NCBI GenBank assembly: GCA_002269645.1
Contig: NIVC01002925.1
Span: 1-64,000, forward strand
Direction: 5' to 3'
DNA length: 64,000 bases
Origin: Macrostomum lignano
Taxonomy: Eukaryota
The position numbers were made by a program, and so were the translations under genes. Below are positions 1,499 to 60,046 of this stretch, one piece after another (position 1 is the first letter of the stretch; every line of letters starts with the position of its first letter). The notes under the pieces were generated by a model. The model was given only the letters and a program-made list of their open reading frames with translations, was not told the DNA's origin and did not search any database.

Positions 1499-3717
1499 AC
1501 AGCACGGTAACGAAGGTTGAAACTCGAGTGGAGTTCACCTGGCAGGTGTAGCTGCCGGAGTGCTGCCGCAGCGCCCTGTTGATCCGCAGCTCCGGGCCCG
1601 CACTGCAGTTCCCATCTGGTTGGCACAGCTGCATGCCGCTTGTGTTGTTACCAATGATCTCCGAACCATTGAAGTACAGCGTGCAGCTCACTGCAAAACT
1701 GTCGTTCTCGGCTGCTGTTTGCGCATGCGAGGATGCTGAAAATCAACACGTTATGGTTGCTTTTTGTCTATTAATTGTATTTAAATATGGAGACAAGCAA
1801 TGACACTCAGCTCACACAGCACTGTGACGGAAGTTGACTCTGCGGCAGAGCCAAGCTGGCAGGTGTAGAGGCCAGAGTGCTGCGACTGTGCCTTCACAAC
1901 CGACAGCTTCCAGGTTTTCGTGCAGTTTCCGTCTGGTTGGCACAGCTGCAGCTGCCTTGAGTTCGTGCTCAACTCCGTGCCGTTGCATAGAATGCACGAG
2001 CAGCTCACGTTAAAGCTTTCGTTTGCAGCAACAAGTTGGTCTGTCGATGGTACTGCAAATCAAGTCATATAAATTTATACTTTAATGCTATAATGCTATT
2101 TACCGTGGAGTTTCTCGTGTCATTCATGACCCATGAAGGCCAGCCCCCAATGCACAGAGAGTGCACAAGCCTGATGACTAGAAAGTCAGGCCAAAGCCCA
2201 CAATATTATCAGATATTTTCATGCCACTTTTGAGGCTTCTCTGGTCTTCAAGTGCTTTGGGAAAGTCCACAGCCTCACCCAGGCGCACTGTCTGCAGCGT
2301 CAGATCTGAGACGCTCAGATAGCCGTAGTCTCTGGCTGAGAAGCTCAGGCTCACGTTTCTCCTGAGGAGCAGATACCGGACCTGGGATGTTGCACTCAAC
2401 ATTTTGAGATCCGGGTGAGATGAACTAATTAAGCACATAATCTCTGTAGCATCAATGCTCACCTCTGCAAGACAGTCCACCATGTAGAGCCCATTACGTG
2501 TGCTACTCATCGACCTATTTGTAGTGACACCGCAACGCTTCAACTGCTCAGGTACTTATTAAACTGTTTGCTCATATTTTTGAGTTGCAGTGATTGCCAG
2601 AAAACAGTTGCTCCTCTGAGTTCGAAGTCCAGATCTCGATGCCAGCTGAGCTGCGGAACATTTCAGCATCCGAGAAGACTGAAATTATTGGCCAGATCAA
2701 CGAGATTGTAAAAATACCGGAAGAAAGAGGGTTTCAGGAATGCTGCAGTGATTTAGTTTCATAAGCGAACCGATGACTTTAGGGTTAAATTACAGCATCC
2801 AGCTTAGACAGTCAATAAAAAGCAGCTGCTGTTTTTTATGAAATCAACCAACTAGCCAAGAGTCCTGCTTGGACTCAACCGCAGGGACATCAGGCCGTGA
2901 CCATGGACCTCTCGGTCATGGCTGTTTTGCCAGGCATCGTTACCTTCAGGAAAAATCCGTAGCGAGGAATGATGCCCTTTCTGCCTCTCCGGTGTCGAGA
3001 ATGCGGAGCACTTCATCTGTGAATGCTCCGCCTTTACTCAGGACAGGCTTCACCTACCTCAGCCCAAACTCGGACCTCTCCGACGTTTTCAGGCCCGAGA
3101 ATCTCTGCCAGCTCGTCCGCTACCTAAGGCTACCGCGCTGCGGACACTGGCACCACCGGGATCTCCCTGCAGAACACCGCAGCACCAGCTTCCCTGGTCG
3201 CCAGGGGTTCGCAAAATGGGCGGCGACGCCTCGCTGCATCCGGATGCCCGGACTCCCTGAAGCTATGTCAAGTAAGTTAACCAACTAGTCAATCAGTGCT
3301 TCATAAAACTGGTCTGTGGTGTAACTCACCCTCGCTGCCCTTCACTGTCACAGAACCGATGAGCACTGACTCACTCAGCTGCACAGCGAACCAGTGAAAT
3401 CCGCTATCGTTAAAATGCTTTTTGTCATTGCTGTGAATGAACTGAAAACTTTGGCTTGTGTTCAGAACATTGCTCTCATTCAGCTGGTCTCTCTCGTGAA
3501 AGCAAGAATAGAAATAAGAGGACTGCCAGGCGTTGAGTACAGTCTTGTTGCGAATCGGCACCCCACCTGCAACATAGGAACTTGAGAAGTTAGAAATCCA
3601 TTTCGCTTGAAAAAACACCCTGGAGGGTTTAAAAAGCTTTCACTCACAGTCGCAGAGACAGGTAGCGATGCAGAGCAGAGCCCCTAACAGGGATATCAGC
3701 GCTGCAGCTTCCATCAT
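1499..3717 (-). CDS. Receptor R8 (5' part): signal peptide - FTP-like lectin - Ig x2; continues or is truncated beyond the left edge; frameshifted as assembled
   Basis: Exons (minus): SP 3717-3648 ([23 protein letters not shown]); lectin 3566-3330 ([26 protein letters not shown]), 2678-2463 and 2381-2279 (VRYLLLRR...LSVSDLTLQ); Ig 2052-1816 and 1735-1499. All have GT-AG ends and matching phases except 2678-2463 (216 nt), which is 2 nt short of frame (two apparent 1-nt deletions). Confidence 0.8.
2860..3285 (+). mobile_element. 5'-truncated non-LTR retrotransposon 3' end in an R8 intron
   Basis: [12 protein letters not shown] followed, after a frameshift, by [18 protein letters not shown]. 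This matches the TGH + C-x2-C...H-x4-C C-terminus seen in the 15.3-16.1 kb LINE fragment; ends near a TAAG-like tail. Confidence 0.6.
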
Positions 3718-4829
3718 GCAGACACTTGCTGATCACTTCAAAGCAATTCTGTCGTTAGTACAACAAGCGCAGCAAAAAAGAATCCATTTTGATCTTGTGT
3801 CATGGCTTTTGTATTTGGCTGCAGAAACCATTGATGCAGGGCTGCAGTCGCAAGTTCTGTTCCGGCAGGTGGTGACTACAAGTTCCATCTGTGTATAAGA
3901 CTGCAAGTTGAAATAAAATGTTTACAAACTCTCTGGCTGCAGCTTAGCCAAACCAAGGACTTCTAGATAATAGAAGTCCTTGGCCAAACTGAACTTGGTT
4001 TGAATAAGCGACGAAAATCATATTTGGGTTTCTTGGCTCCGATGGGGACTGAGTTTGCTTGGCCGTCTCTGACTCTGCAGGTGTCGCGACTTTCCTAGTC
4101 ATTTCTTAGTTCACCTCTCTCTCTGAGGCTTTTCATATTACCAATTCCAGAATCAGAATCGGTTCGGATCTTCCAAGAAAAACAGCAGTATAACTATTTA
4201 ACTCTGTTGAATGTTTGACTGCCTTAACAACCTCACTTAGCACAATTTTTCACTTTCTTCTTGGCGATTGTCATTCAATAATAAAAACTTTATAGCACGT
4301 ATCTCCCTCTAGTTATGGAGACAAAAAGTTATACTTCACAAATTGGTTCTGGTTCTGGAACCAGAACAAGCAATATGAAAAGGCCCTCTGTCTAGCTCAA
4401 TCTTGTTATTCTTATCTCTGTCTCCCTCGCCGCCTTCTGATTGGCTCTCCAGTCTCCCTCCGCCCCCCTCTCCTTATTATTCTGGGCTCAACCCCCCAAA
4501 GTTAATGTCTGGTATAAATACCATTAAATATCGGTTTGGGCCCTGCGCCCACTTACTCCTCCAATTTAACTCCAGTATAGGAATTGCTGAAATAGAGTTT
4601 TCTTTTGCATTTATGCAATGCATCGTTGCTTAATGATGAAACTTTTATTAAACTATAACTCAATAATTTCAAACAGACAGGAACAGCTGAAATTTCGCCT
4701 GACAGAGCTCTATTTGGAATTCGGAAGTGCAAAAATCCAGATGCGAATTTAATGGTACACTGTCTCAGTTTACTTGTCTTTGTACATGTACTGCAGATTA
4801 TTACTACTTTAGGTTGACACGCTGGCGCT

Positions 4830-7259: not shown

Positions 7260-7279
7260 CTTTGCCAGCTTGAAAACCC

Positions 7280-10200
7280 TCAGGTCACGTAGACACCAGT
7301 AGCATCCTCCAGGTTGTAACCAGAGTTCTCATACTCCATGGCAGCAGAAGCGGCAGCAACCGGTGCTCCAGATCCAGGCGTCGTGGATCGATCAGACTAA
7401 AGCGCAAAGAGTTCGAACTTTAGCTGTCACAGTTTGAGTCGACTGTACAGATTGAGAAAACCAAAGCTTACCATTGGAATAGTTTGTTTTGTCCACGACT
7501 TATTTACTCTGAATTTGATGACTGAAAACTGAATTTAGCAGATGCAACACGGCAGTTTAGAGCACAGAGACGGAAAATATCATTTAGAGAGAGGGGTTAC
7601 TCACCGAGACCAAGACAAGCAAGAGCACACTTAGCAGAGCAGTTGCTGTTAGAAATCCGTACAAGAACTGTGAAATGTACATGCGTAAGGACTGCACATC
7701 AGGTTTGATGAGACCTTTGTGATTGCCGCAGCTGTAGCAAGCTGAGGCCCTGTGCTCAGCCTTGAACCGGATCTCCGGCGGCAGATTCTGCACTGCGCTG
7801 CACTCGATGAGGCCCACAAGCCACTCTGAGCTCAGCTTCCCTCCGATCGCCAGTGCCCACGTGCTGACCCAACCGTCGCCGCTCGAGCTCTGGAATTGAT
7901 GAAGCTCGCTGGTCAGCATGTCAGCGCGTAGTCACTCATAGTGTGAAAGTGCAAAATGCAAGCGACTCACAAATGACAGCTGCGTGAGGTTTCGCACTTC
8001 CAATCCGCCACCAACAGCGCTGCATCTGTGCTCGGGCACTGGTAGAGATGCAGACGATGCGAACTGTACCAATACGTCGGATGAGTTCTCGCAGGTTGGC
8101 AGATTGAGTACAGAAATTGATGCGCTTGATGGCGGGTCTGTGAGCATATTAAAAAGGGGAATGGAGTTCATCAAGTTCGATCAATAAGCTTTTCAGTTAT
8201 CTGATGGTTTTTATGATTTTTTCAAACCTATTTAGGCCGTGGATCGATACGTATTGAATACCGTACCGAAGATGAATAGAAGTTACTCCACATCATTTGA
8301 GTGCAAAAGTCTATGTGAATATTTTGAATATGTACACATCTCCATCGATCGTTCTACACTGGTTGGTGGATCCAATAATGGCGTCCGAGAGAGAAACCAC
8401 CCCTTTGACAATCCGTTTCCCTTTCCGGACTTAGTTGACATACCCTGTAAGGATAAAAGGCTAATAGAAAGGTGACCTGAAATGCAGCCTGATCTGCTGC
8501 CGTTGAAGGCTGCTCCTACTGCCACCAGTCAGCCTTAAGCTTGCACTCCTTGTGAGCATACACTGAGAATTTTGTCCCAATCTGTGTACGAGAGGAGTCC
8601 CAGTGCAACGCTGCTGTAACCAAATGCTAATCAATCGACTGTCATCCAGAGGCCGGAATCAACTTACAAAACACCGTTAAGAACTTTGAGCTCCGCGAGC
8701 TGCCCAGCTTGCACGTGTAGTTTCCATGGTGCCACAGCTGCGCCCTGTGAATGACGGCTTCAGCTTGTCCAACGCAGCTTCCGTTTGGAAGGCAGAGCTC
8801 CAACTTCGGTGAGAATTCGGTTCGACCGTTGCAGTCCAAAAGGCAGCGCACTGAGAATGCTGAGTGCTGCAGCACCGCCTTGGGGCTCTCGACTTCTGAA
8901 ATGCAATGATTTGAGACACTTTTGAGACGAACTTCAGTCATTTTGCATGTACTGCTAGCGCTTCAACTTAGCACACATACCAGGACTTGGACACAATTCA
9001 TGACAGCCGAGAAATCTTACTGATTTTCCCAGTCTGAAGCCTCAGGTCAGCAAAGCTCATGTGCCCGTCCGTGTCTTTAGACACGTTTCTTCGCAGGAGT
9101 AGACTTCGGACCTGCAGTTTAAATGCTCATCATTTCAGGTTGCTTTAAGAGACCATAAGACTCAAATCACTGCAGATATTTGAAATATTTTTACCTCAGC
9201 AACGCATTTCACGTGAAACATTTCTCCATCTGCGACGTCTCCCTGCTTTTTAGTCACGCCGCATGGCCTCCAAAGGTGCATCGAATTTTTAAACTGAAGG
9301 CCCATATTCCTGATGTTGCAGTTATCCCATGGATCAGGGAGCTGCTAGAGTTGGAGGTAAATATTTCAATGTCCTTTGCTCGATTATAATTATATATCAC
9401 ACCGTCTGAAAATAAGATGAGGAGTTACTTTTGATCTTACTGAAACATATTACTGTACGGTGGAATCTTCAGAGCAGGAGACTCAGTCTTTACAGAAGCC
9501 TAAGGCAGAAAGAAGAAGTAAGTTGTCTTTCACTCACCCTCTCTGCCCTTCAAAGTCACAGATCTGATGATCACTGGCTCATTCAGCTGCACGGCGAACC
9601 AGTGAAACCCGCCGTCTGCTTGGCTTCTGTTGGCGCTGTGGAAGAACTTGTAGCTGGTTTGCCTGTTGCTGATGATGGAGGCTTCGTCTGCCTGATTCCT
9701 GCTGTGGAAACACGTCGGACCATCGTCGAATGATGACTGCCACGAACTCAGAATGCGACTTCGCCGAATTGGGAACTCACCTGATGAAGGCGAGTTAATC
9801 GATTGAGCAACATTGAGCAACATTGAGCAACACTGAGCAACACTGAGCAACATTGAGCAACATTGAGCAACACTGAGCAACATTGAGCAACACTGAGCAA
9901 CACTGAGCAACACTGAGCAACACTGAGCAACACTGAGCAACACTGAGCAACATTGAGCAACATTGAGCAACATTGAGCAACATTGAGCAACACTGAGCAA
10001 CACTGAGCAACACTGAGCAACACTGAGCAACATTGAGCAACATTAAGCAACATTGAGCAACATTGAGAAACACTGAGCAACACTGAGCAACACTGAGCAA
10101 CATTGAGCAACACTGAGCAACACTGAGCAACACTGAGCAAAACTGAGCAACACTGAGCAACACTGAGCAACACAGAGCAACATTGAGCAACACTGAGCAA

Positions 10201-13200
10201 CATTGAGCAACATTGAGCAACATTGAGCAACATTGAGCAACATTGAGCAACATTGAGCAACATTGAGAAACACTGAGCAACACTAAGCAACACTGAGCAA
10301 CATTGAGCAACATTGAGCAACACTGAGCAACACTGAGCAACATTGAGCAACATTGAGCAACACTGAGCAACACTGAGCAACACTGAGCAACATTGAGCAA
10401 CACTGAGCAACATTGAGCAACACTGAGCAACACTGAGCAACACTGAGCAACATTGAGCAACACTGAGCAACATTGAGCAACACTGAGCAACACTGAGCAA
10501 CACTGAGCAACATTGAGCAACACTGAGCAACATTGAGCAACATTGAGCAACACTGAGCAACACTGAGCAACACTGAGCAACACTGAGCAACATTGAGCAA
10601 CATTAAGCAACATTGAGCAACATTGAGAAACACTGAGCAACACTGAGCAACACTGAGCAACATTGAGCAACACTGAGCAACACTGAGCAACATTGAGCAA
10701 CACTGAGCAACACTGAGCAACACTGAGCAACATTGAGCAACACTGAGCAACACTGAGCAACATTGAGCAACATTGAGCAACATTGAGCAACACTGAGCAA
10801 CACTGAGCAACATTGAGCAACATTGAGCAACACTGAGCAACATTGAGCAACACTGAGCAACACTGAGCAACATTGAGCAACACTGAGCAACAAGATTCTG
10901 AAGGCGGCCTACTTTCTACTCACAAAGAACAAAGACTTCTGTCTCAATCTCAATGACGTCATATCTGCAAGTATAAACTCCGGAGTGCATTGCCTGAGCT
11001 CTGTCCACTTGCAGACTTGAATTTGTCAGGCAGCTCCCATTCGGAGGGCACAGCCGGAGGTCGCCACCCAGTGGACGGTCTGAGCACTGCGATGCATTTC
11101 CGCAGTGCAGAGAGCAGCTCACGGTGAAGCTTGCGTTTTCGGAAACTTTCTGGCTCGGAGATGAAGCTGGGAATTTAATAAAGTTCAGATTCATAAATTT
11201 ATTCAAACTGAGCCTATTTCTATTCTATTGAAATGGAAGTTCTTGGTGGAAAAAATCTCCGTGTCCTATCGAATGCATCCTTGCCATCTTTAGTGAAAGC
11301 ATTTTAAGCTAATCAATGACTCACTCAGAACAGCGACTTGAAGTAATTTTGACAGATGTTTCACATGAGCAATGTGGATCTGCTGATTGTGTCGGCAGTC
11401 CCCACTTGGAGTGCACAGCTGCTTAAAAGTACGAGTAGAATATCGACCCTGAGATGGATTTTTCTGATCATGTTCATACTCATACGTCTTCATCCAAGCT
11501 CAAGTCGGAACTCCTACCAGAACTCTGCTCTCTTACTTGGTCACATTTTTTGCCTTGCATGCAGGAATAAATCGCCACACTCATTGCTTTCTACTTGTTG
11601 TAGCGAGCAACTCTAGCTGGTTGTTGCGAGTGCATAGTTAGCCACTCAAAAAGGTGGAGAAATAGAATGTGGCTGTGTCTGTATATTAACGAGTGTTGTC
11701 TGGTAGAACACAGATTACCAGTTCATTGAGTGCGCGTTGGGATGTGCTCGAGCAGAGGGAAGTGGATAGGCTGGGTGGGGGTCACGGAGTGCAAACTATA
11801 GGTGCCCGAACTGCCTGCTTAAGCATGCTACACTTGTCAATAGAGAAACTCTTACTTTTGTACAAGAATGAATCTGGAGACTGATCACTCACTGATCCAC
11901 AGAGAAACTGATCAGTTCTTGTTCAAAAACTGAGAGTGCAAGAAAGTGTAAAATGATCTGAGCAACTTACACAGCACAGCAACAAGTGACGGTATTTCCA
12001 GTGAGCCGAACCGACACCTGTAGAGACCGGAGTTCGATGGCCTGGCACTGGCAATGCTTATCGAGCTCTCGGCTGAGCAGCTGCCGTTCGGGTAGCACAG
12101 CTGAGGCTGGCGGAAATCAGCTGAGCCCGCATGATGCAGTACGCAGCCCAGGCTGAGACTGGAGCCCTCAGGGACCACTTGATGCGGCGTTGCAGCTGTA
12201 AAATAACAAACAGGAATGACTTCATTTGTCAGCGATGTACATGCAGACAGTGACTGACCATTCAGGTGCAAAGCTGCTACTCACAGAGAACAGCCACACT
12301 TGTGACAGCAACCACCTGTCCAATGCTGCAGTTGTAGTCTCCCGATTGTGTTGGAGTTGCCGCTGGGATCTGCAGACTCGTCTGTGCTGTGCAGGTCTTG
12401 TTGGGGCGACACAGCAGCAGCTGTCCGACAGCAGCGGAGTCTGCGCACTGAGCTGCATCGCCGCCTCCGCAGTGCAGAGTGCAGTTCAGCGTGAGGCTGG
12501 AGTTCTCAGCAACCACTTGGTTTGGTGATGACGCTGGAATGCGATACGAAATGGCATGATCAAGGTCTCCGTAATATAAGCTGTCTATATTTAATTTATA
12601 GGAACATTTTAACTGTAACAGGCAGGTTAATATTTAAGGAACTAATAAGAGCAAACTCAAACTACATCAGGCTCTCACATAGGATTGTGATTGAAGACGA
12701 TTGATTTATCGAGCCAATGCTGCAGGTGTAAACTCCAGAGTGCGATGGCTGAGCTCTGTCGACCTTCAGCTCGTTAGTGGCGGTGCAGCTGCCGTTTGGT
12801 GAGCACAGCTGCAGCCTGGCTGAGTGTGTGCTCAGGTGATCAGCTCCATCGCATTGCAGAGAGCAGCGAACTTCAAAGCTGGACTGCTCTGCCACCAGTT
12901 GAGGGCTTGAAATGTCTGAAAGCGAGATGTTTGGATCAATCAAGCACTGATAAATCTACCCTAGCAGTCTCGGTTGAAAAACTTACAACTGTACAGGCTA
13001 AATGGTAAAAGGGAACATGCTAGAATCTTCTTGTTTGAGTACTTCAGGCAAAGGGGAGTATCCCATCTCAGACAAAATTAGAGGGCTCAATAACTGTTTT
13101 TTTCGCGTAATCAAAGAAGCAAACATTTGAGAACAGCTGCTTTACTCAGCGGGAGCGTTTGAAGCCGCAGGTCCGCAAAGCTCATGAAGCCGTGGTCAGT

Positions 13201-13971
13201 TGAAGCAGCTGTAACGTTTCTTCGCAGAAGCAACTGCCGCACCTGAAGTGGTTGCGTTGGTGTTGCGAAATCGGTTGCGATGGTTACCAGATTTCGCTCC
13301 AAAACTCACCTCTGCAACGCAGTTCACTGTGAAGATCTCCCAGCCGCGATCTGTGAATTGTTGCTCTCCGTGACCCCACACAGTCTCCAGTGCTGCTGGG
13401 ACTCTCTGAACTGGCTGCTCATGTTCCTTGATCTGCAGTGATCTCCTGAGAACAGCTGACTGCTGCTGTCTGATGTCCAGATCTCAATGCTTCTGGCTCT
13501 TTCAAAGACATGCGATGCTTTATCTGGAATGTGAGAGCACCGTGAGCAGAGACAGCTGGCTTGGAGCCCGCATTTGAGTGAGTGACTCACCGCCTCTGCC
13601 CTTCACAGTCACAGATCTGATGAGCACTGGCTCATTCAGCTGCACTGCGAACCAGTGAAACCCGCCGTCCGCCTCGCCCTGCCCTTTGCTGTGGAAGAAT
13701 TTGTATCTTATATTGTTTAGTAAGGAATCCTCACGCGACCTGCTTCGTTGGTAGAAACACGTGGGTTCTCCAAAGATGATTCCAAAGGACGACTGCCAGG
13801 TGCTCAGCACGCGGCTCCAACGAATTGGGAACTCGCCTGCAAGTTGGAGCAATGGGGATGAGCAGTGCTCTCTGTCTGCGATTACAACAAGCCGGCACTC
13901 AACTCACACGTGTCAGTCGCTCGTGCGCAGAGCAATGCCAGCAGCAGCAGTAGCAGCAGAGTCAGCTTCAT
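7280..13971 (-). CDS. Receptor R7: SP - FTP - Ig x4 - FTP - Ig - membrane-proximal domain - TM - class II (YEN) tail; three 1-nt frameshifts as assembled
   Basis: Exons: SP 13971-13908 (MKLTLLLLLLLALLCARATDT); lectin 13836-13591, 13523-13310, 13242-13146; Ig 12915-12679, 12533-12285, 12195-11971, 11166-10924; lectin 9780-9538, 9405-9195, 9111-9021; Ig 8895-8668; DPPSS exon 8137-7971; exon with TM (FLYGFLTATALLSVLLLVLVS) 7889-7605; probable tail 7396-7280. Exons 13523-13310 and 9405-9195 are each 1 nt short (GGG where GGGG would keep frame; R4 has GGGG at the second site); the tail has one extra A. Confidence 0.82.
9802..10891. repeat. 10-bp minisatellite (CTGAGCAACA/TTGAGCAACA), about 109 units, intronic in R7
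   Basis: Read directly; fills the intron between an Ig exon and the second lectin; gives the spurious LLSVAQCCS ORFs. Confidence 0.97.
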
Positions 13972-28600: not shown

Positions 28601-30441
28601 GATTGTATATCCTCAAAATACTTGCCTCAGCCTCACAGTCCACCTTTAAAGATTCTCCCGCGGTGATGCTGCCCTTCTTGTCAGTTTGGCCGCACTTTGT
28701 CCAATAGGCCTCCGAGTCCTCGTACTGGCGACTCATGCCTTTTGAGCGGCAATGATCACCGGAAAATATCGCTTGGACTCGGTTGGAAGTGAAAATTTCG
28801 ATACCCTTGGCCCTCAGAAAGTCGGTGCTGCTTCCGACTGAAGTTTGGGAAGTTTGTCTCACCTGAAACCCAGCGCTAATGAAAGAAGGTTGAGCTCAGC
28901 TGATCGGCACTCACCCTCTCTCACTTTCACAGTCACAGATCTGATGAGCACTGTCTCATTCAGCTGCACTGCAAACCAGTGAAACCCGCCGTCTGCTTCG
29001 CTCTCGCCGCCGCTGTGGAAGAACCGGTAGCTGCTCTCCCTGCTTTCAATGTCTCGTGCCTCCCGCGAAGCGCTCCTGTTGTGAAAGCAGGTCCGTCCAT
29101 AGGCTGACGACTGCCACGAGCTGAACACTCGGCTCCTCCGAATTGGGAAATCGCCTAAATTCCACAGAATGAAATCTTTAATGCGAAGTTTGAAATGGCA
29201 AAAACTGACTTAACTATTAGAACTTCAAGCTAAGATGCTCACACAGCACAACAACTGTAGTCGAGTACTTCCAGGAGCCGAATTTGCAGGTGTAGCTGCC
29301 GGATTGCATCGGGTGCGCCCTGCGAATCTGCAGCCGATTGTCTGCTGTGCAGCTGCCGTTTGGAAGGCAGAGCTGCAGTTCGCTTGAGTCTGTGCTCACC
29401 GCGGCTGCTCTGCAGGACAGCGAGCAGCTGATCGTGAAACTGGAGCCCTCCGCCACCAGCTCTGGTGCAGACATGCCTGTGAAGTCAACCGGTTTATTAG
29501 CACAGTTTTAGTAACTAACGCTTTATTCAGATGGACTCTCAGTGTGCTCACCAAGCTGCACAGTTTGTAGCTGGAGATCGGCCGCGCTCATGAAGTCAAG
29601 AGGCGGCGAGGCGTCCTCTGCCGTCACGTTCTTTCGCAGCAGTAGGTGCCGAACCTGAAAACTCGATTTTTGTGCTTCAATAGTTTATGGCTATGAAGTG
29701 AGACATTTTCTAAAGCATAGCAACAACCCACCTCGGCCGTACACTCCACCGTGAGCAGTTCGCCGGAAACAGCGGCGTCTGCGCTCTCAGTGAGACTCGC
29801 TGGGACTCGCTGAACTGCCTGCTCATGCTCTCTGAGCTGCAGTGCTCGCCTGAAAATATCTCCCCGAAGCTGCTGGACGCCCAGATTTCAATTCCGCTGC
29901 TTCTACGATAGACGCTAGATTCGCTGTCTGCAATTTTTCGAGCGGTTTTCTAGATTAAATCAATGGTTACCAAGCAGGATGGCTCTTCACATTACCAGTT
30001 GGCTCTTCACATGGCTATTTCAGGAGTTTCTTCTAGTTTTCAATCCTCAAATCTGCTAAGCAAGTCCTCTCTCACCGTCTCTGCCCTTCACAGTCACTGA
30101 GCTGATCAGCACTGACTCGTTGAGCTGCACGGCGAACCAGTGAAACCCGCCATCTGCTTGGCTCTTGTCAGCGCTATGCAAAAACCTGTAGCTTTGCATT
30201 CTGTCACCGATCACCGAGGCCTCAGCACTGCGAGTTCTGTTGAAGAAACAGGTCGGCCCGTCGCCAAAGGACGACTGCCAGGTGCTCAGCACGTGATGCC
30301 TTCGAATTGGAAGCTCACCTGAAATTTTGAGGCACAATGGCTGAGCACTCCAGCAGTCGCGGCAGCAGCAATAATGTACTTACAGTCTGCCAGAGCACCC
30401 GGTCCCAGCGAGACAATCAGGACTAGAATCGCAGGCACCAT
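25612..30441 (-). CDS. Receptor R5: SP - FTP (disrupted) - Ig - FTP - Ig x6 - membrane-proximal domain - TM - class I tail
   Basis: Exons: SP 30441-30384 (MVPAILVLIVSLGPGALAD); lectin 30318-30076, 29927-29732 (196 nt, lacks WxxCG, out of frame), 29654-29552; Ig 29476-29243; lectin 29154-28915, 28837-28626 (GC donor), 28540-28450; Ig 28370-28131, 28044-27808, 27720-27487, 27398-27153, 27069-26845, 26771-26544; 26464-26298; TM exon 26222-25959; tail 25884-25801 and 25728-25612 (SECSYYTVV...DGYREMVADGD*). Confidence 0.85.
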
Positions 30442-44500: not shown

Positions 44501-45253
44501 AAGCAGGTCGGACCGTCGCCAAACGACGACTGCCAGGTGCTCAGCACGCGGCTCCTGCGAATCGGGAGCTCACCTGCACAGGGGCGTCGCCATGGTTTTT
44601 ATGGTAAGTCAATAGCTCCCATGACTAAATTTCTAAAACATAAGAATACATTCCAACATTATTATGGAAATACGTGCTGTTAGCATTCATTTTGGCGCCG
44701 CAGGCACTCATTTTGGCGCCGCGAGCACTCATTTTGGCGCCGCGGGCACTCATTTTGGCGCCGCGGACACTCATTTTGGCGCCGCGGGCACTCATTTTGG
44801 CGCCGCGGGCACTCATTTTGGCACCGCAGGCACTCATTTTGGCACCGCAGGCACTCATTTTGGCGCCGCAGGCACCCTGTTTTCCGCCGTAGGCACTCAT
44901 TTTGGCGCCGCAGACAGGCACCCATTTTGGCGCCGAGGGTCTCATTTTGGCGCCGAGGGTCTCATTTTGGCGCCGAGAGCCTCATTTTGGCGCTGCAGGC
45001 GCTATATTTTAACACCCTAAAACAAAATTTTTGATTTCCATGACGGGTCACCAAGTGTCGCGGGAGGGGCAAAGCATTAGCATGCCCCCCATAGCTTTTA
45101 CTGGGTGGACATGCCCTCCTGCGCCCTCCCCTTCTGCGGAAAAAAATATTTTGAAATTTTTGAAAACACGTCATCGAACTCACAGTCTTCGGTCGCTCCT
45201 GTTCGGTGCAGTGCCAGAAACAATACAACCACCATGAGTTCAAATGCTGCCAT
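32577..45253 (-). CDS. Receptor R4 (largest): SP - FTP - Ig x2 - FTP - Ig - FTP - Ig x5 - membrane-proximal domain - TM - class I tail
   Basis: Exons: SP 45253-45184; lectin 44573-44331, 44252-44026, 43820-43730; Ig 43308-43072, 42608-42366; lectin 41926-41684, 41561-41350, 41266-41176; Ig 41050-40823; lectin 40578-40354, 40049-39847, 39194-39104; Ig 39034-38795, 38237-38004, 37082-36849, 36739-36491, 34192-33956; fused domain+TM exon 33870-33407; tail 33320-33213 and 32726-32577 (EPECSYMLV...CTVYEEIVGDGD*). All exon lengths fit phase. No internal signal exon was seen, but two genes cannot be excluded. Confidence 0.78.
34450..34640 (+). mobile_element. CORE-like SINE fragment (same family as 52980-53225)
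   Basis: TGTGTCCTTGAACAAGACAC...TTGCTTCAGTTCACCCAGCTGTAAAATGGGTACC is shared with the 53 kb copy. Confidence 0.65.
35219..35948 (+). CDS. Intronless secreted PAN/Apple + C-type lectin-like protein, antisense within an R4 intron; one frameshift near 35705
   Basis: Signal MPHLLGLVAAAALLTAASA; DCASLCDSKLDCQAFSLADGPCQL (PAN Cys pattern); CPAGFSDDLCG, MLGG, WFW, WLTGQPDD, LND (CTLD motifs). The two ORFs 35219-35830 and 35715-35948 join by removing one base near AACAACCGACACC. Confidence 0.75.
38320..38378 (-). pseudogene. tRNA-like head (pseudo-tRNA or SINE 5' end)
   Basis: Minus strand GCCAAGTGGTAAAGCGTCTGACTCTTGCATCAAAGTCCCTGGTTCGATTCC has A- and B-box-like motifs; anticodon stem imperfect. 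Confidence 0.45.
38440..38767 (-). mobile_element. SINE copy (same family as 14184-14528) in an R4 intron
   Basis: Reverse complement matches CCAGGCTCGATTCCAAGTGCAGTCAC...GGGCCGCTGTACACTCCTGTG...CACAACCC, with a (TAA)n tail. Confidence 0.8.
41957..42340. repeat. 10-bp minisatellite (CTGAGCAACA type), about 38 units, in the R4 intron paralogous to 9802-10891
   Basis: Read directly. Confidence 0.97.
43495..43665 (+). mobile_element. tRNA-headed SINE fragment
   Basis: GAGCTCAGCAGTAAAGGCAC...GGTTCGATTCC head plus the GAGAGTGTATATGCCTGACGATTGGAAAGTC core seen in other copies. Confidence 0.6.
44682..44995. repeat. 21-bp minisatellite (CACTCATTTTGGCGCCGCGGG type) in R4 intron 1
   Basis: Read directly. 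Confidence 0.93.
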
Positions 45254-46407: not shown

Positions 46408-49400
46408 TTATGAGTCTTCAATCTCTCCATCAGCCAGAATCTCAATAAACTCGGTGCATTCGCTGGCAGAGTCCTGCAAATCGGCTGTGGTGGCCTCTGC
46501 CTGACCTCCAGGTGGGATTATTGTTAAGTAGCTGCACTCTGGCAGCTCCTCCGTGCAACAGCAGGCCTGCAAATGTTTCAGTGCGGTGCTTGTGTAGGTC
46601 CGGGTAGAAACACCCACCGTCCCACAACCAGCGTTAAGGCAATTCTGCCCATTCCACTGACTAATGAGCACCTACTTTAATACTGTATGCAGGCACGCCC
46701 TCACACGCTCACACAGGGTGTACAGCGGCCTGACTTTCTAATCGTCAGGCATGTACACTCTCTGTGCCGGGGGGGGGTTGGCCCTCATGGCTGTGAATCG
46801 AGCCTGAGCCCCTGGCCAATTTTGAGCACAAGCCCTAAATGAATGCAGCCGCGCACCAAGCAAGGGGTCGTGTCGCGAGGGTCGGACGCGTTTGTTGAAT
46901 CTGCCGAGCATGAACTTTTGTTGTTTGATTATTTTTTGCCTTAGGTATACTTGCTGTACAAGCAAACCCGAGCGTAGAGAGCAATGAGAAATTAAAAAGT
47001 TGAAAAGGAACTGAGAGATTCGGACGAACTCTGGACAGTGGACATTGTCGGATCGAAGTCATCGGCATAACCAATGTCGACTCCAAACACACTATTGACT
47101 CTATGTGACTGGCCTCATCAAGAACGGAGGTGCTATTTTTGGACGGAGTAGCAAACTTCGCCGTGGACATTGTGCAGAACCGATTTGGCATGTTCGCGTA
47201 CTCGGATGCTGTAACAAAGACAACCCGCTAAATCAAAGTCACGCGTACGACAGCAAACACTGACCGCGCTTCAATTCGTTCAAGTCCTAAGCCGTGATAC
47301 GAAGAACGCTGGCTTCCTTCTCACTCATGACGACTTTGTCAAATATGCTATGAACGGTGATTCAACCGCGCCTGAGAAACCTGAGCATCATCATCCTCTT
47401 GAGTTGAGTTGAGGGGAGTCAAACTCCGCCCAGGAGTGCTTGAGTACAGGCAGTGCTGCACTCATGGGAGTACGCTGGCGCTGCAGTTGAAGCTGTGGAA
47501 CAGATCGGAAGTTCATGAAGTGCGCATGATGACCATATCCAACGCAGCAAGTGTCATCAAAGCTGGGGGTGGGGGCTAGCCCAAGCTGCGGGTGGCCCAG
47601 TCAACAACTGGACTAATCTACTACCGGACGTGACGCCTGGAATGCCCACGAGGCCAGTTCCAACTTGACTATTGACACTCGGAATGCCGACGAGAGCAGT
47701 TCCAACTTGACTAATGACACTCGGAATGCCAACGAGAGCAGTTCCAACTTGACTAATGACACTCGGAATGCCGACGAGAGCAGTTCCAACTTGACTAATG
47801 ACACTCGGAATGCCGACGAGAGCAGTTCCAACTTGACTAATGACACTCGGAATGCCGACGAGAGCAGTTCCAACTTGACTAATGACACTCGTAATGCCGA
47901 CGAGAGCAGTTCCAACTTGACTAATGACACTCGGAATGCCGACGAGAGCAGTTCCAACTTGACTAATGACACTCGGAATGCCGACGAGAGCAGTTCCAAC
48001 TTGACTAATGACACTCGGAATGCCGACGAGAGCAGTTCCAACTTGACTAATGACACTCGGAATGCCGACGAGAGCAGTTCCAACTTGACTAATGACACTC
48101 GGAATGCCGACGAGAGCAGTTCCAACTTGACTAATGACACTCGGAATGCCGACGAGAGCAGTTCCAACTTGACTAATGACACTCGGAATGCCGACGAGAG
48201 CAGTTCCTACTTGACTAATGACACTCGGAATGCCGACGAGAGCAGTTCCAACTTGACTAATGACACTCGGAATGCCGACGAGAGCAGTTCCAACTTGACT
48301 AATGACACTCGGAATGCCGACGAGAGCAGTTCCAACTTGACTAATGACACTCGGAATGCCGACGAGAGCAGTTCCAACTTGATTATTGACACTCGGAATG
48401 CCGACGAGAGCAGTTCCAACTTGACTAATGACACTCGGAATGCCGACGAGAGCAGTTCCAACTTGAAAATCAAAATCAAATCAAACAACAAAAGTTCAAG
48501 CTTCATAGATCCAACAGCGTTTACTGCTGAGCTTCTCTGCCCCCAATGAAGTCCGGTTACTTGTTTATATCTTTCGGAACTCATTTTAGATATAAGGTAT
48601 CAGTTACTGAAAGTAGAGATAGAAATTTAGCAGAATTTTTATGTAAAACAAAAAATATCCATAAAAATTTTGTTCACACTGTGTAACAGTTCGTGTAACT
48701 CACAAACAGGAATAATTCAAAATTTGAGTTCAATAGTTTTTTAAATGACTGGTTGCAAATATTTCTTAAAAAGAAAATAAAACGCATGGCACTCACAGCA
48801 TCTGTCGGCTGCGCATCGTACGGGATCATCATGGAGTTGACCTGCACAATTGAGTAGATCTTCAGCCTGGCAGATGGCGAACTTCTGGAACGAGACCGCC
48901 TGGAAATCCGCTGCAACATGAATAGCATTGAGCAGTGAATCATGCAGTTAAGGGAAGAATAAAGGTCGAAGTGTCCAACAGTTTCTCACCACGGCCGCAA
49001 CCGCAACCAACACAGCAGACAGGGCGACTGCACCGCCAATTGTGGCAGCGGCAATCGCAATGGACAGGGAACTCAAAATCTCCGGTTCTGTGCAGATGGC
49101 TTCCACAGACTCCTGACTCAATACCCGAAAGCCGAGCTGCTGCGGGAGCTGCTGCTGAGCGATGCACTTTATGGAGATGACACCGCCGCTTTGCAGGCTC
49201 GAGTCCGGGACCCACTGGCTGATGGTTCCGTTCTCGCTAGAGCTCTGCAAGCCCGCACCCGTCACAGTCAATTGAGCAAATAAAGGTTAATTTTGGATTG
49301 ACGAATTTAAGACCAACCTGGTGAATGAGTGTGAGATTCTGCATTTCAATTCCAGCAGCTTCTGCGCCGCATCTGTGCTCGGAGATTGGCTCAGACTCTG

Positions 49401-51836
49401 TTGATGTAAACTGCACGATGACATCTGACAGGTTCTGACAGCTGTTGAAATTCAGCACTGACACTGACACTCTCGATGGGGGGTCTGAAAAATATTAAAT
49501 CTGAGTGCATGTTGAGCCACCTGTGATATCCTGTCTGTAATAAGAAACTTTTGAAGAGAATTTAAAGAGCTCACACAGCACGGTGACCGAAGTTCGAGAC
49601 TCCACAGAGCCCAGTCTGCAGGTGTAGTTTCCAGAGTGCAGAGGCTGCGCCACAGCAACGGCCATCCTGTGACTGCCTGTGCAGCTGCCGTTCAGCAAGC
49701 AGAGATGCAGTCCGCTTGAGTTTGAGCACAGATCTGAGCCGTTGCAGTGCAGCGAGCAGCTCATAGTGAGCTTGGAGCCCTTCATCACAACTTGACGCGG
49801 GGAGACTGCTGCAAAAGTCAGTAAGTTACCGAATTAGAATTCAAAATAAAAATCGTCATATTTATCAATAACGAATAAAAGATTGACAAGATATGCTTTT
49901 CTCAGGATTACTTGACACCATCATTAAATTAAAGGCATCGATTTGGATCTGACAGAAATGTGTCAGTAGAAAATGAAAGTGACATGCCTGACAGCCCATC
50001 CCAAGTCACACAGTCACGCACTCACAGCACAGAGACAGGCTTGCCAGCTTATGCCAAGTCTGCACTCACACAGCACAGAGACATGCTTGCCAGCTTATGC
50101 CAAGTCTGCACTCACACAGCACAGAGACATGCTTGCCAGCTTATGCCAAGTCTGCACTCACACAGCACAGAGACATGCTTGCCAGCCCATGCCAAGTCTG
50201 CACTCACACAGCACAGAGACAGGCTTGCCAGCCCATGCCAAGTCTGCACTCACACAGCACAGAGACAGGCTTGCCAGCCCATGCCAAGTCTGCACTCACA
50301 CAGCACAGAGACAGGCTTGCCAGCCCATGCCAAGTCTGCACTCACACAGCACAGAGACATGCTTGCCAGCCCATGCCAAGTCTGCACTCACACAGCACAG
50401 AGACAGGCTTGCCAGCCCATGCCAAGTCTGCACTCACACAGCACAGAGACAGGCTTGCCAGCCCATGCCAAGTCTGCACTCACACAGCACAGAGACAGGC
50501 TTGCCAGCTTATGCCAAGTCTGCACTCACACAGCACAGAGACAGGCTTGCCAGCCCATGCCAAGTCTGCACTCACACAGCACAGAGACTGCAGTGCGCAT
50601 CTCCACAGAGCCCAGTCTGCAGGTGTAGCTTCCAGCGTGTTGAGGCTGCGCTCTGGGAACCCGCAGCTCCCGTGATGCATTGCAGCTGCCGTTCGGAAAG
50701 CAGAGCTGCATCAGAGCTGCTAAGCCAGCATCTGACTGGTCTGTGCAGCCCAATGAGCAATTCACTGTGAAGCTGGAGTTCTCCGCAACGAGTTGAGCTT
50801 CTGAGATCCCTAAAACGTAAAGTTGTTCACAGGTAGCAGCAGTTCAGGTACGATATTTCTGACATTTGAGCAGCTGCAATCACCACAGTCGTGACTTACT
50901 CAGCTGCAACTTTTGAAGCCGGAGGTCAGCGAAACTCATGTAGTCAAGAGAGCTCGAGACGTCCGCGTTTGTTATGCTTCTTCTAAGAAGAATGTACCTC
51001 ACCTGAGAATTTGTTATTGAAAAACAACTTTCTAACAACTCTGCAGCAGGTTGTTTATTCTACTTAATAAGATTATTTATTATCCATCATTATAGAGTTT
51101 GCTAGTAAATATATACAGGCAGTTTAAATTTGAAATGTATTCACCTCAGCCATGCAATCCACTGTGAAATTTTCACCAGCGGAAATTCTTGGGCCGCCCT
51201 CAGTCAGCCCGCACCGTCTCCAGAGATGCAGTGATGCATTGAACTGGCTGCTCATGCTCCTTGAACTGCAGTGATCTCCTGAGAACAGCTGGCTGCTGCT
51301 GTCTGATGTCCAGATCACAATGCCTCTGGCTCTTTTAAAGACTTTCGATGCACCATCTGGAATGCGAGAGCACCGTGAGCAGAGACAGCAGACTTGGAGC
51401 ACGCATTTGAGTGAGTGACTCACCCTCTCTGCCCTTCACAGTCACAGATCTGATGAGCACTGGCTCATTCAGCTGCACTGCAAACCAGTGAAACCCGCCG
51501 TCTGCTGAGCTCTGGCCAGCGCTGTGGAAGAACCGGTAGCTAAAGGTTTTGTTTTTGAGCACGGATTCCTCATCAGTGTGGCTTCTGTTGTAAAAGCAAG
51601 TTTGGCCGTCGCCAAAAGACGACTGCCAGGAGCTCAGCACGCGGCTCCTGCGAATGGGGAACTCGCCTGCAATAATGAGCACAGATTGAGCACTTACATT
51701 CTTTTTATTCATGCTGACATTCATTGCTCATGCAGAACTCACAGTTTGCTCCAACTTCAGCATGCGCGGCTGTCTGGACCAGCAGCAGCAGCAGCAGCAG
51801 CAGCAACAGGTCTGCCATTGCGAACCAGACCTCCAT
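46408..51836 (-). CDS. Receptor R3: SP - FTP - Ig x2 - membrane-proximal domain - TM - class I tail
   Basis: Exons: SP 51836-51743; lectin 51666-51424, 51356-51145, 51002-50900; Ig 50809-50576, 49808-49575; 49484-49318; TM exon 49244-48990 (ILSSLSIAIAAATIGGAVALSAVLVAVAAV); tail 48910-48797 and 46566-46408 (LPECSYLTII...SECTEFIEILADGEIEDS*). All phases are consistent. Confidence 0.85.
46690..46830 (-). mobile_element. Partial SINE (GAGAGTGTACATGCCTGACGATTAGAAAGTC core); similar pieces at about 2140-2200, 31120-31210 and 58085-58230
   Basis: Core sequence match read by eye. Confidence 0.6.
47655..48465. repeat. 42-bp minisatellite, about 19 units, in the R3 tail intron
   Basis: Unit TTGACTAATGACACTCGGAATGCCGACGAGAGCAGTTCCAAC. 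Confidence 0.95.
50017..50588. repeat. 46-bp minisatellite, about 12 units, containing the R3 Ig1 exon end and its 5' splice site
   Basis: Minus-strand unit GTCTCTGTGCTGT|GTGAGTGCAGACTTGGCATGGGCTGGCAAGCCT. Confidence 0.93.
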
Positions 51837-52635: not shown

Positions 52636-56782
<4,147 letters not shown>

Positions 56783-57625: not shown

Positions 57626-57840
57626 TTGAAGCGACGGTGCTCGGCAATGGACATCGAGAGGTCAGCGTTTATTTTGAAATTCAAAGATTTATTTGTGCTG
57701 AATACGAGTATTAACCATTGAAACTGAACAATTGCTTGAGTTCATTAAAACAAATTTCAGCTCGCACTCAAGAACAGGTGCCCTGTACACAGATGCAGTG
57801 CATGCAAGGTGAAGAATCTGATGATCATTGAAGCAGCTCG

Positions 57841-60046
57841 CTAGTTGGCATCGGCCACAATTTCCAAATAGACGGTGCAGTCGCTTGCGGTGTCCGAATT
57901 CCTGTCCGAGTTGTCGGCGGGCTCGGCGTTGGGATTCACCGACAGGTAGCTGCACTCGGGCTCGCAGCTGCGGGCGGTGACGCGCGGTCGCAGCGTCGGC
58001 TCCGTCTGAAATCGGTGGAGCCGGCTCGGATTTCATCATCAATTCATCATTGCTCATCAGTTGTTGAGCATTCGAAGTTTCAATATTCGCAGGAGCAGGC
58101 ACTCACACACACGCTCACGCGGGGTGTACAGCGGCCCTGACTGTAATCATCAGGCATGTACAGTCTGTGCATGCATGAAAACCCAATGGCCTATTTTTGA
58201 GCACAATGCCCAAATGAATGCGGGGAATCGTGTACCACTGAGCTTCCCTGCTCCTGCATGAGCCATCACAGCAGTATTCTGTACAGGGGTCAGATGCCTC
58301 TCACCTTGCGCACTGCCTTAGCAACGCCAGCCGGATTATCTGGCACATTGCTCAGCTTTGCTTCGGGACTTGAGGACTGCAACTGTCTGCTCTTCAGTTT
58401 CAGCTTCAGCTGGAATTCGAAATTCGGTTATTCTCTTACCTGTCAAAAAAAAATCAAATTGACCAGTTACTGACCAGAGCGACGCCGCAGATTAGGGCGG
58501 TTAAAACAAATACGAGGGCCGACACAGTTGCTGAGAAGGTTGCGTTGCTGGCTGAGTTCGGCGATGAGGCTGCAGGTGCGAGAGAGAGTGAATGAGAGGT
58601 CACTGAGACTGTTGTGAATGAATGAGAGGTCACTGAGACTGTTGTGAGTGAATGAGATATCACTAAGACTGTTGTGAATGAATGGGAGGTCACCGAGACT
58701 GTTGTGAATGAATGAGAGGTCACTGAGACTGTTGTGAATGGCTGAGAAATCACTAAGACTGTTGTGAATGAATGAGATATCACTGAGACTGTTGTGAGTG
58801 AATGAGAGGTCACTGAGACTGTTGTGTGAGTGAATGAGAGGTCACTAAGACTGTTGTGAATGAATGGGAGGTCACTGAGACTGTTGTGAATGAATGGGAG
58901 GTCACTGAGACTGTTGTGAATGAATGGGAGGTCATTGAGACTGTTGTGAGTGAATGAGAGGTCACTGAGACTGTTGTGAGTGAATGAGAAATCACTGAGA
59001 CTGTTGTGAATGAATGAGAGGTCACTGAGACTGTTGTGAATGACTGAGAAATCACTAAGACTGTTGTGAATGACTGGGAAATCACTGAGACTGTTGTGAA
59101 TGACTGAGAGATTTTATATTAAAACCAAGAGAGAATAATTTCAGTCATTAGTTTACCTGGCGGGTTTTTAGGTCGCCTAACCTGCAGTCTGAGATCCGCA
59201 AAGCTCATGACATCATCGTCATCTGTGTCCGGTTCCTTGCTTGACACGTCCTTCCTTAGCAGCAGGTGATGCGCTGGCTTGGATGTCTGAAAGCAGTTCA
59301 GCTACTGTAGTTGCAGTTTGGCAGCAATTTAGCCTGCATTATTGACAGAACCCACCCCATTCTCGCAGGACACAGTGAGAAGTTCACCACGAGTGATGCT
59401 TTCCAGAGAGCTGTTAATCACACCGCAAAGTGTCCATTTTGGCAGTGAATCATTGAACTGCCCGCTCATGCTTCTTGAAGTGCAGTGCTCATCGCCGGAG
59501 AACACCCGCCTGCTCCAGCTCGATGTCCAAATTTCAATGTCGATCACTCGGTTGTAGGTGTATTGAACTCCGTCTGAAGTGAAATTTTCCCAATTTAGGA
59601 GTATCAGCAAATTGCCGAGTATGAAAGACAGTGACTGACTCACCCTCTCTGCCCTTCACAGTCACAGAGCTGATCAGCACTGGCTCATTCAGCTGCACTG
59701 CGAACCAGTGAAACCCGCCGTCAGCTTGGCTCTTGCCTTTGCTGTGAAAGAACCGGTAGCTTTTCTGCTTGTCACTGACAACTGAGGCCTCCTCTGTCTG
59801 GCTTCTGTTGAAGAAGCAGGTCTGGCCGTCGCCAAAAGACGACTGCCAGGTGCTCAGCACGCGGCTCCTTCGAATAGGGAACTCGCCTGCAATGATACCA
59901 CGGTATCTACGCTCGTACTCGTATCAGGAGATTTCGATGACTCATTGTCAGACCAAGAAAGTCAGTTACTCACTCGTGTCAGAATTGTCAGCGGCCGATC
60001 CTTGCAAGATAAAAATGAAGATCAGTCCTGCTAATTGGAGCTTCAT
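57841..60046 (-). CDS. Receptor R1: SP - FTP - Ser/Thr/His-rich repeat stalk - TM - class I tail (no Ig)
   Basis: Exons: SP 60046-59974 (MKLQLAGLIFIFILQGSAADNSDT); lectin 59886-59644, 59573-59356, 59286-59157; stalk+TM 59103-58475 (629 nt, open frame, ends SALVFVLTALICGVAL); tail 58409-58305 (LKLKLKSRQ...) and 58005-57841 (EPECSYLSV...DCTVYLEIVADAN*). Confidence 0.85.
58580..59105. repeat. 30-bp coding minisatellite forming the R1 stalk
   Basis: Unit GACTGTTGTGAATGAATGAGAGGTCACTGA type, about 17 units. Confidence 0.93.

Follow-up and report, generated by a model that had tools for sequence, protein, structure and literature searches.

Eight tandem Macrostomum genes for type I membrane proteins with divergent galactose-binding-like heads, immunoglobulin domains and tyrosine-containing tails

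We analyzed positions 1 to 64,000 of contig NIVC01002925.1 from the flatworm Macrostomum lignano (assembly GCA_002269645.1), a stretch of 64,000 nucleotides here called the window, and found in it eight paralogous genes, R1 to R8, all on the minus strand and running in tandem from 60046 to 1499. The R1 signal-peptide (SP) exon has its ATG at 60046, and 1499 is the final base of the last visible immunoglobulin (Ig) exon of R8, of which only the 5′ part is present, the remainder lying past the window start; R1 to R7 are complete. Using tblastn with module peptides together with motif scans, we counted 12 lectin-like modules and 28 intact Ig exons across the array, with lectin/Ig numbers of 1/0 in R1, 1/3 in R2, 1/2 in R3, 3/8 in R4, 2/7 in R5, 1/1 in R6, 2/5 in R7 and 1/at least 2 in R8. 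A preliminary description of the locus had listed eight same-strand paralogues; its counts were identical to ours for every gene, and the two ends that it gave were exact to the base. As detailed below, this is a real and constrained tandem family of type I membrane proteins that is at least partly transcribed. The exons are as follows, L1 to L3 being the exons of a lectin-like module, MP1 and MP2 those of the membrane-proximal (MP) module, TM the transmembrane segment, and a, b and c the successive lectin-like modules of one gene.

R1, 57841..60046, minus strand: SP 59974-60046; L1 59644-59886; L2 59356-59573; L3 59157-59286; no Ig
R1, minus strand: TM exon ~58475-58570; juxtamembrane exon 58305-58409
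R1, minus strand: A-type tyrosine tail exon 57841-57996, ECSYLSV ... CTVYLEIVADAN, stop
R2, 52636..56782, minus strand: SP 56719-56782; L1 56346-56588; L2 56063-56262; L3 55906-55993
R2, minus strand: Ig exons 55587-55820, 55278-55508, 54966-55199
R2, minus strand: MP1 54714-54880; MP2 with TM 53628-53882; tail 52636-52770, DCSYLTV ... CTEFLKIVADGD, stop
R3, 46408..51836, minus strand: SP 51743-51836; L1 51424-51666; L2 51145-51356; L3 50900-51002
R3, minus strand: Ig 50576-50809, 49575-49808; MP1 49318-49484; MP2 with TM 48990-49244
R3, minus strand: tail open reading frame (ORF) 46408-46671, acceptor not fixed, ECSYLTI ... CTEFIEILADGEIEDS, stop
R4, 32577..45253, minus strand: SP 45184-45253; lectin a 43730-44573; lectin b 41176-41926; lectin c 39104-40578
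R4, minus strand: Ig after lectin a 43072-43308, 42366-42608; Ig after lectin b 40823-41050
R4, minus strand: Ig after lectin c 38795-39034, 38004-38237, 36849-37082, 36491-36739, 33956-34192
R4, minus strand: fused MP1, MP2 and TM exon 33407-33870; tail 32577-32726, ECSYMLV ... CTVYEEIVGDGD, stop
R5, 25612..30441, minus strand: SP 30384-30441; lectin a 29553-30318; Ig 29243-29476; lectin b 28450-29154 (intact)
R5, minus strand: Ig after lectin b 28131-28370, 27808-28044, 27487-27720, 27153-27398, 26845-27069, 26544-26771
R5, minus strand: MP1 26298-26464; MP2 with TM 25959-26222; tail 25612-25728, ECSYYTV ... DGYREMVADGD, stop
R6, 17289..20170, minus strand: SP 20107-20170; L1 19785-20027; L2 19499-19713; L3 19284-19386
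R6, minus strand: Ig 18856-19089; MP1 18606-18769; MP2 with TM 18130-18402; B-type tail 17289-17444, SEYENSEYKLENATGIYIL, stop
R7, 7280..13971, minus strand: SP 13908-13971; lectin a 13147-13836; lectin b 9031-9780
R7, minus strand: Ig 12679-12915, 12285-12533, 11971-12195, 10924-11166, then 8668-8895 (after lectin b)
R7, minus strand: MP1 7971-8137; MP2 with TM 7605-7889; B-type tail 7280-7396, MEYENSGYNLEDATGVYVT, stop
R8, 1499..3717, minus strand: SP 3648-3717; L1 3330-3566; L2 ~2560-2660; L3 2280-2381; Ig 1816-2052, 1499-1735

The genes share a common plan. Each of the eight has its own SP exon, which ends in a phase 1 donor of the consensus GTRAGT, and each of the seven complete genes has one TM segment and a terminal exon with a tyrosine motif and a stop codon, so that the shared SP, TM and tyrosine-tail exons of the preliminary description were borne out; the MP exons, which it had also taken to be shared, are present in R2 to R7, the two exons being merged into one in R4, and are lacking in R1. 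R4, R5 and R7 are free of internal SP and TM segments, and short introns precede their internal lectin modules, so that we regard them as single multi-lectin genes. The 28 Ig exons measure 216-249 nt, and all of them are open, symmetrical in phase (1-1) and flanked by AG/GT sites; each lectin module consists of three exons of phases 1-1 (L1), 1-0 (L2) and 0-1 (L3). Since the exon or exon triplet of every domain starts and ends in phase 1, modules can be duplicated, lost or skipped in frame. The exon ends that appear as "CEF" or "VLCE" in read-through translation are T/GTGAGT donors (the slash marking the splice site), and the spliced junction codon puts a Cys ahead of every lectin head. Splicing the exons in silico, a check that had been proposed for them, gave uninterrupted frames with canonical GT-AG introns only for R2 (572 codons), R3 (514), R4 (1354, over 19 exons) and R6 (483), the frames of R2, R3 and R4 extending up to the TM and that of R6 being complete. 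The L2 donor of R5b at 28626 (minus strand) is GCAAGT, giving a GC-AG intron, while all paralogues have GT. Database entries follow parts of the array: the GenBank protein BOX15_Mlig012084g1 (P0004, 339 aa) maps onto the R1 exons with 100% identity, its record being NIVC01002544.1 of assembly GCA_002269645.1, where R1 is the sole annotated gene within the 22 kb examined, and the UniProt predictions P0002 and P0003 map onto the R6 exons with one exon skipped in each.

Judged by sequence, the repeats are firmly assigned as Ig domains of the C2/I type. Pfam Ig_2 scored 36.5 bits on the R3 model against a cut-off of 27 and matched 23 of the 28 Ig exons at E<=0.01, and a profile of the Ig exons matched MDGA1, titin, contactin, Robo, Dpr and Fc receptors in the PDB with E values from 1e-11 to 1e-5, in agreement with the Ig label given to these exons earlier. 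The domains are about 77 residues long; the residues C17, C42 and C63 never vary, G59 and Y61 occur in >=90% of the exons, and extra cysteines (LHC, QLC, NGSC) stand beside the B-F Cys pair. The MP module, modeled from the fused R4 exon plus single-exon fragments, was predicted by AlphaFold2 (AF2) to form a seven-strand sandwich followed by the TM helix (pLDDT 73), and its Foldseek matches were weak and Ig-constant-like (IgY CH2, butyrophilin, TrkA D5; E 0.008-0.1); this two-exon β-sandwich is probably Ig-like. The TM segments contain no charged residue. The tails fall into two types. The A-type tail (R1 to R5) reads ECSY[LMY]x[VI], an acidic stretch and then C[T]x[Y/F]xE[IM]V[AG]DG[DN] before the stop, which can be summarized as CSY[LMY]x[VI] plus [T/G]x[Y/F]xE[IM]V..DG[DN], and the B-type tail (R6, R7) reads EYENS[EG]Y[KN]LE[ND]ATG[IV]Y[IV]. 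CSYxx[VI] is a YxxPhi motif, of the kind used in sorting or SH2 docking, and it has Cys at -2 and is no canonical immunoreceptor tyrosine-based inhibitory motif (ITIM); YENS of the B-type fits the YxN consensus. From these motifs, the tail tyrosines may serve in sorting or signaling.

The head is predicted to be a divergent member of the galactose-binding-domain (GBD)-like superfamily, with the F-type lectin as its closest match in fold and profile. An AF2 model computed from an alignment of eight paralogue sequences gave a β-sandwich (pLDDT 68, pTM 0.72) in which the N-terminal ~45 residues were poorly defined. Its best Foldseek match was the striped-bass F-lectin 3cqo (E 4e-5, TM score 0.42), closely followed by CBM32, F5/8 type C, a sialidase galactose-binding module, galactose oxidase, factor VIII C2 and the eel fucolectin 1k12. 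These are the folds that a review of F-type lectins names as having the F-type fold (PMC5712786). The CBM32, F5/8 type C and sialidase modules score nearly as well as the F-lectin, and the fold comparison speaks for the superfamily without singling out one family in it. The β-sandwich of discoidin/F-type-lectin type that the preliminary description had expected of the N-terminal module was thus recovered as a prediction. Aligned with hhalign to four real F-type lectin domains, the head reached a probability of 40% with eight family sequences and 72% (E 3e-5) with 14, and the alignment was co-linear over the domain, WQSS standing opposite TQSS and residues 40-82 being gapless. Head residues F45-F46-H47 fall on F45-Y46-H47 of the eel fucolectin AAA, whose aromatic pair forms the fucose methyl pocket; W60, V63, L65 and R79 coincide in the two, and head R89 falls on AAA R86 after a three-residue insertion. 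Of the basic triad His52-Arg79-Arg86 (H x26 R x D x4 R/K), the two Arg have invariant counterparts in the family and the His has none, and Asp81 is found in only about half of the paralogues. We also considered His47 of the head as the counterpart of fucolectin His52 but rejected it, as the gapless alignment puts His47 on AAA His47 and a Ser at 52.

The paralogues show both exchange and constraint. Self-blastn revealed a common Ig-lectin-Ig segment in R7 (8661..11288, minus strand) and R4 (40816..42732, minus strand) with 90-94% identity including the introns; the copied segment of 2.6 kb contains a 30-nt minisatellite intron, lectin b and flanking Ig exons, with an exon dN/dS of 0.17-0.29 and an intron divergence of 3-14%. 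The R7 segment is duplicated from, or converted with, that of R4. The 30-nt minisatellite, which reads LLSVAQCCS in one frame, lies directly 5′ of L1 (R7b 9798-10919, R4b 41941-42344, both minus strand) and is of unequal length in the two copies. Across paralogous exon pairs, dN/dS (Nei-Gojobori) was 0.17-0.39; two adjacent Ig exons of R4 differ at 4 sites, and their dN/dS of 0.99 comes from those 4 only. With a mean pairwise identity of 57%, compared with 41% for the Ig exons and 42% for the MP module, the head is the most conserved part of the ectodomain, and its variation is restricted to separate stretches flanked by invariant blocks. Differences in module number arise by duplication of exons of matching phase and by exchange between paralogues.

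All named relatives come from the same species. Queried with a rough R3 model, a homology search yielded five proteins, each of them from M. lignano, and an exhaustive HMMER search with the head profile against 1.84 billion representative proteins gave 22 matches at E<=1e-3, of which every named one is from M. lignano; a JGI metagenome fragment (P0016) is a possible member. Two candidates from outside Macrostomum were rejected and are probably unrelated to the family: P0022 (ENA, 2708 aa), an FG-GAP repeat protein with a marginal local match only, and P0024, a long repeat protein that we judged to be of bacterial type from reading its sequence. Nor could the UniProt names of the A0A1I8... entries be accepted as real domain combinations: near-identical lectin-like fragments (P0006-P0013, P0017, P0018, P0023, P0026) carry contradictory labels (MATH, CUB, fibrinogen C-terminal, ricin B, LamG, Pep_M12B_propep, coatomer zeta, IRS-type PTB), and because the names are mutually inconsistent they are unfit as evidence on domains. 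P0005, from another assembly, is a second R1-like protein (88% identical) and may be a duplicate from the polyploid genome; a single inbred line (DV1) is represented.

The preliminary description had tentatively regarded the family as undescribed, and our literature search found no paper describing it; its members appear in an orthogroup table that is not discussed in the text (PMC7336406). There, Mlig012084.g1 and.g2 of the transcript-derived Mlig_37v3 set are placed in orthogroup OG0000001 (Brand et al. 2020, PMC7336406), which with 158 transcripts is the second largest orthogroup of that study and includes M. lignano (at least 36 gene identifiers), M. hystrix and M. spirale, M. pusillum being absent (PMC7336406). 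The presence of these two transcripts in an orthogroup with three Macrostomum species indicates that the family is transcribed and genus-wide. OG0000001 is annotated as "positional_mix" (non-specific, other, tail, testes), is more highly expressed in adults than in hatchlings in two species and has a mean protein divergence of 1.30, annotations that hold for the orthogroup as a whole and are unspecific to R1 to R8; mixed orthogroups of this kind were put aside by Brand et al. 2020 (PMC7336406). Gene-level expression of Mlig012084 was not found in the supplements of PMC5946080 or PMC12896417.

Taken together, the eight paralogues form a Macrostomum-restricted tandem family of type I membrane glycoproteins that we consider likely, with appreciable room for doubt, to act as cell-surface carbohydrate-recognition receptors or adhesion molecules. 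Each protein would present one to three divergent GBD-like heads, each preceded by a Cys, on 0-8 small C2/I-type Ig domains serving as stalk or spacers; glycan would be bound by the head at a basic site in which Arg79 and Arg86 of the fucolectins are retained; and the tail tyrosines would mediate YxxPhi-type sorting and endocytosis or, once phosphorylated, recruit SH2 proteins. Glycan binding by the head is plausible. A number of observations weigh against this reading. The Pfam matches of the head to F5_F8_type_C and F5_F8_type_C_2 (E 0.005-0.26, 12-17 bits) are below the cut-offs of 27.8-28.2, and a sequence profile search of the PDB with the head gave no match even at E 10. The column of AAA His52 holds an invariant Ser, and the Cys82-Cys83 bridge and the calcium motif (AIDGN region) are absent from the alignment, the stretch reading TCFxNR / G-x-x; with the triad His replaced and bridge and calcium site missing, sugar binding is not assured, and discoidin-type relatives bind lipid or protein instead of sugar. 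On these sequence features the head does not qualify as an F-type lectin in the strict sense; the β-sandwich prediction of the earlier F-type/discoidin label is supported by Foldseek and hhalign. In the tails, the consensus of the immunoreceptor tyrosine-based switch motif (ITSM; scored as TxYxx[VI]) is found only in R1 (TVYLEI) and R4 (TVYEEI) and that of the ITIM (scored as [SIVL]xYxx[IVL]) only in R5 (SYYTVV), and the R2 and R3 tails carry Phe at the distal Tyr position. The same 22 kb of the GenBank record also takes in R2 and some of R3, which are left without annotation there. Finally, L2 is out of frame in the assembly in 4 of the 12 lectin modules, namely R5a, R7a, R7b and R8.

These broken exons raise the question of whether R5, R7 and R8 are recently inactivated pseudogenes and the cluster a birth-and-death family with dead members, which we regard as possible but do not favor. 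The L2 of R5a (around 29700-29926) lacks 19 nt, that of R7a has a frameshift near 13340-13400 and that of R8 (~2560-2660) two frame breaks, and the missing annotation of R2 and R3 would fit such a history, as would the pseudo-exon fragments of Ig type in introns of R4 (42954-42910, minus strand) and R7 (11421-11359, minus strand), reading TCSIGSINKSSSIAV and QLCTPSGDC..., which are probably remnants of lost Ig exons. Yet the remaining exons of the three genes are all intact: their Ig exons (14 of 14) and SP exons are open with intact splice sites, and so are the MP and tail exons that R5 and R7 possess. The lesion of R7b is the loss of 1 nt at ~9326, one G of a GGGG run in comparison with the 94%-identical R4 copy, which is typical of long-read assembly errors, and in P0008, a UniProt entry that stems from a different M. 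lignano assembly, an R8-like head has the corresponding stretch in frame. For the broken exons as a group, long-read assembly error and very recent inactivation are both candidate causes. In addition, the lectin triplet could be skipped in frame, as it is of phase 1-1 overall.

The role of the proteins can be read in other ways than as carbohydrate-recognition receptors or adhesion molecules. The preliminary description had proposed an innate immune pattern-recognition or allorecognition system similar to FREPs, VCBPs and Hydractinia Alr, and the clustering, variable copy number, lectin and Ig modules and lineage restriction agree with that, as do the alternation of variable segments with invariant blocks in the head, the ITSM- and ITIM-like motifs of R1, R4 and R5 and the frequent immune function of F-type lectins (PMC5712786). 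We nevertheless find such a specific role improbable, since paralogue dN/dS (0.17-0.39) is well under 1, the head is the most conserved module of the ectodomain and the labels attached to the orthogroup concern adults, testis and tail region and no immune context. M. lignano lives singly and does not fuse, which leaves no obvious setting for histocompatibility. The testis-region and tail-region members of M. lignano in OG0000001, the adult bias in two species and the divergence of 1.30 would suggest a reproductive recognition family, acting on the sperm surface, between sperm and female tract or on the egg in an outcrossing hermaphrodite under sexual conflict, and Brand et al. 2020 tie such annotations to rapid evolution (PMC7336406); the variable number of lectin repeats also recalls the bindins of oysters (PMC5712786). 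This is unlikely in our view, though somewhat less so: the annotations are at the orthogroup level ("positional_mix") with other members non-specific, bindins, which are acrosomal and secreted, have neither Ig nor TM nor tail, and whole-exon dN/dS is <1. We are similarly skeptical of adhesion or guidance molecules whose discoidin-like head binds protein or lipid without glycan recognition, in the manner of neuropilin, DDR, Caspr or factor V/VIII C2, although Foldseek does not separate F-lectin from F5/8C and CBM32 (E 4e-5 to 1e-3), the triad His is absent and the Ig profile is nearest to adhesion and guidance proteins of the Ig superfamily (IgSF), namely MDGA1, contactin, Robo and Dpr. Against this, the aromatic pair F45/F46 does not vary, nor do two of the three basic triad residues, the top structural match is a fucolectin, and restriction to one genus with tandem expansion would be unusual for core adhesion molecules. 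Given the purifying selection, the conserved head, the solitary life and the adult, testis and tail signals of the family, the case for a role in immunity or allorecognition is no stronger than that for one in reproduction or adhesion.

By homology, the nearest known systems are the F-type lectins and generic C2 Ig domains. The eel AAA (1k12) and striped bass MsaFBP32 (3cqo) lectins share the predicted jelly-roll fold class and co-linear conserved residues with the head, and eukaryotic F-type lectins have tandem domain repeats within one protein as seen here (PMC5712786). On the other hand, the present head is ~40 residues longer, has the 3-residue insertion between the two Arg, is sub-threshold in Pfam, lacks His52, Cys82-Cys83 and the calcium motif and is fused to an Ig stalk, TM and tyrosine tail. 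The F-lectin review lists CTL, pentraxin, CCP, TM and FA58C as domain partners, Ig not being among them, and mentions no flatworm F-type lectins (PMC5712786). Oyster sperm bindin carries 1-5 F-lectin repeats produced by exon-level duplication or recombination, a variation in lectin-repeat number also found here, and has a retroelement and microsatellites near its lectin repeats (PMC5712786); in the present array, intronic minisatellites 5′ of lectin exons and an inserted retrotransposon resemble that arrangement. Bindin differs in being a secreted acrosomal protein encoded by few genes that are alternatively spliced and under strong positive selection, whereas the present family consists of membrane proteins from many paralogues with dN/dS <1.

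The FREPs and VIgLs (IgSF with fibrinogen, C-type lectin or galectin) and the VCBPs are likewise lineage-specific multigene families that join IgSF and lectin domains, but they are secreted, have the IgSF part N-terminal and a lectin of another fold C-terminal and lack the GBD head, TM and tyrosine tail, and the FREPs undergo somatic diversification. With its reversed domain order, different lectin fold and TM, the present family stands outside the FREPs and VIgLs. The Alr1/Alr2 family of Hydractinia shares clustered IgSF type I membrane proteins, variable domain number and tails with tyrosine motifs, but has V-set-like Ig domains only and is homophilic and extremely polymorphic in a colonial, fusing animal, in contrast to the lectin-like head and solitary animal here. 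Neuropilin, DDR and Caspr place a head of the same fold superfamily in a single-pass membrane protein, though with other partners (CUB/MAM, kinase, LamG/EGF) and conserved across animals, whereas the present family is genus-restricted. In its working logic, the family would come closest to the cluster of CD33-related Siglecs, in which a glycan-binding head, a variable stalk of C2-Ig domains, one TM and a membrane-proximal Tyr with a distal TxYxx[IV]-like motif are combined in clustered paralogues of fast turnover. The Siglec head is a V-set Ig and the present one of GBD/F-type fold, homology is limited to generic Ig domains, and the tail motifs here are mostly non-canonical. We tentatively raise the possibility, which we hold to be rather doubtful, that the family is a very large, genus-specific Siglec-like recognition system of independent flatworm origin, its repertoire diversified by in-frame shuffling of phase-1 lectin and Ig modules and by gene conversion, and used in self/non-self, microbial or mate/sperm discrimination.

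Clustered families of lectin-plus-IgSF receptors are already known as a kind, the present one being undescribed and lineage-restricted. The molecular basis of cell-surface recognition in flatworms is almost unknown, and because M. lignano is a transgenic, RNAi-amenable model, the family could be put to direct test in it. Should the heads prove to bind glycans and the tails to signal, the design of lectin head, Ig stalk and tyrosine tail would have arisen independently of the vertebrate Siglecs, and it would also be a clear case of domain shuffling enabled by exon phase. A reproductive function would be relevant to sexual conflict and to how rapidly gamete or mate recognition evolves in hermaphrodites, whereas ordinary adhesion would make the family just another lineage-specific IgSF expansion.

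The spaces between and within the genes contain mobile and repeated sequence. Between R5 and R6 lies a retrotransposon (21122-24573, minus strand) with a 599-aa reverse-transcriptase ORF (RVT_1, E 3e-17) and a 348-aa gag-like ORF with a SAP domain, the two separated by a low-complexity tract of 64% GC at 22.7-23.6 kb, and between R6 and R7 a non-LTR (long terminal repeat) remnant (15360-16086, minus strand) with weak RNase_H and zf-RVT matches below the cut-off. An intron of R4 contains opposite-strand ORFs (35219-35948, plus strand) with a signal-peptide-like start and a weak PAN-like match (E 0.03), where two overlapping frames suggest a frameshift; a reading of the plus-strand ORF at 35.7 kb as a C-type lectin (WFW...GQPD by eye) was dropped, as it found no Pfam or PDB support. 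Outside the window, ~8 kb beyond R1, an inverted fragment of the family (L001 1925-2196) consists of the 3′ half of L1 with an Ig start ~100 nt on and resembles P0001, in which L1 is joined directly to Ig; a protein-kinase gene lies farther on. A tandem repeat (59113-58580) lies in the R1 intron that separates L3 from the TM exon, and micro- and minisatellites crowd the introns and spacers of the array, several of them yielding long spurious ORFs:

Satellite tracts: 58580-59113, 57126-57668, 52021-52630, 53900-54700, 47560-48600, 50115-50710, 45465-46071, 16374-16877, 6360-7284

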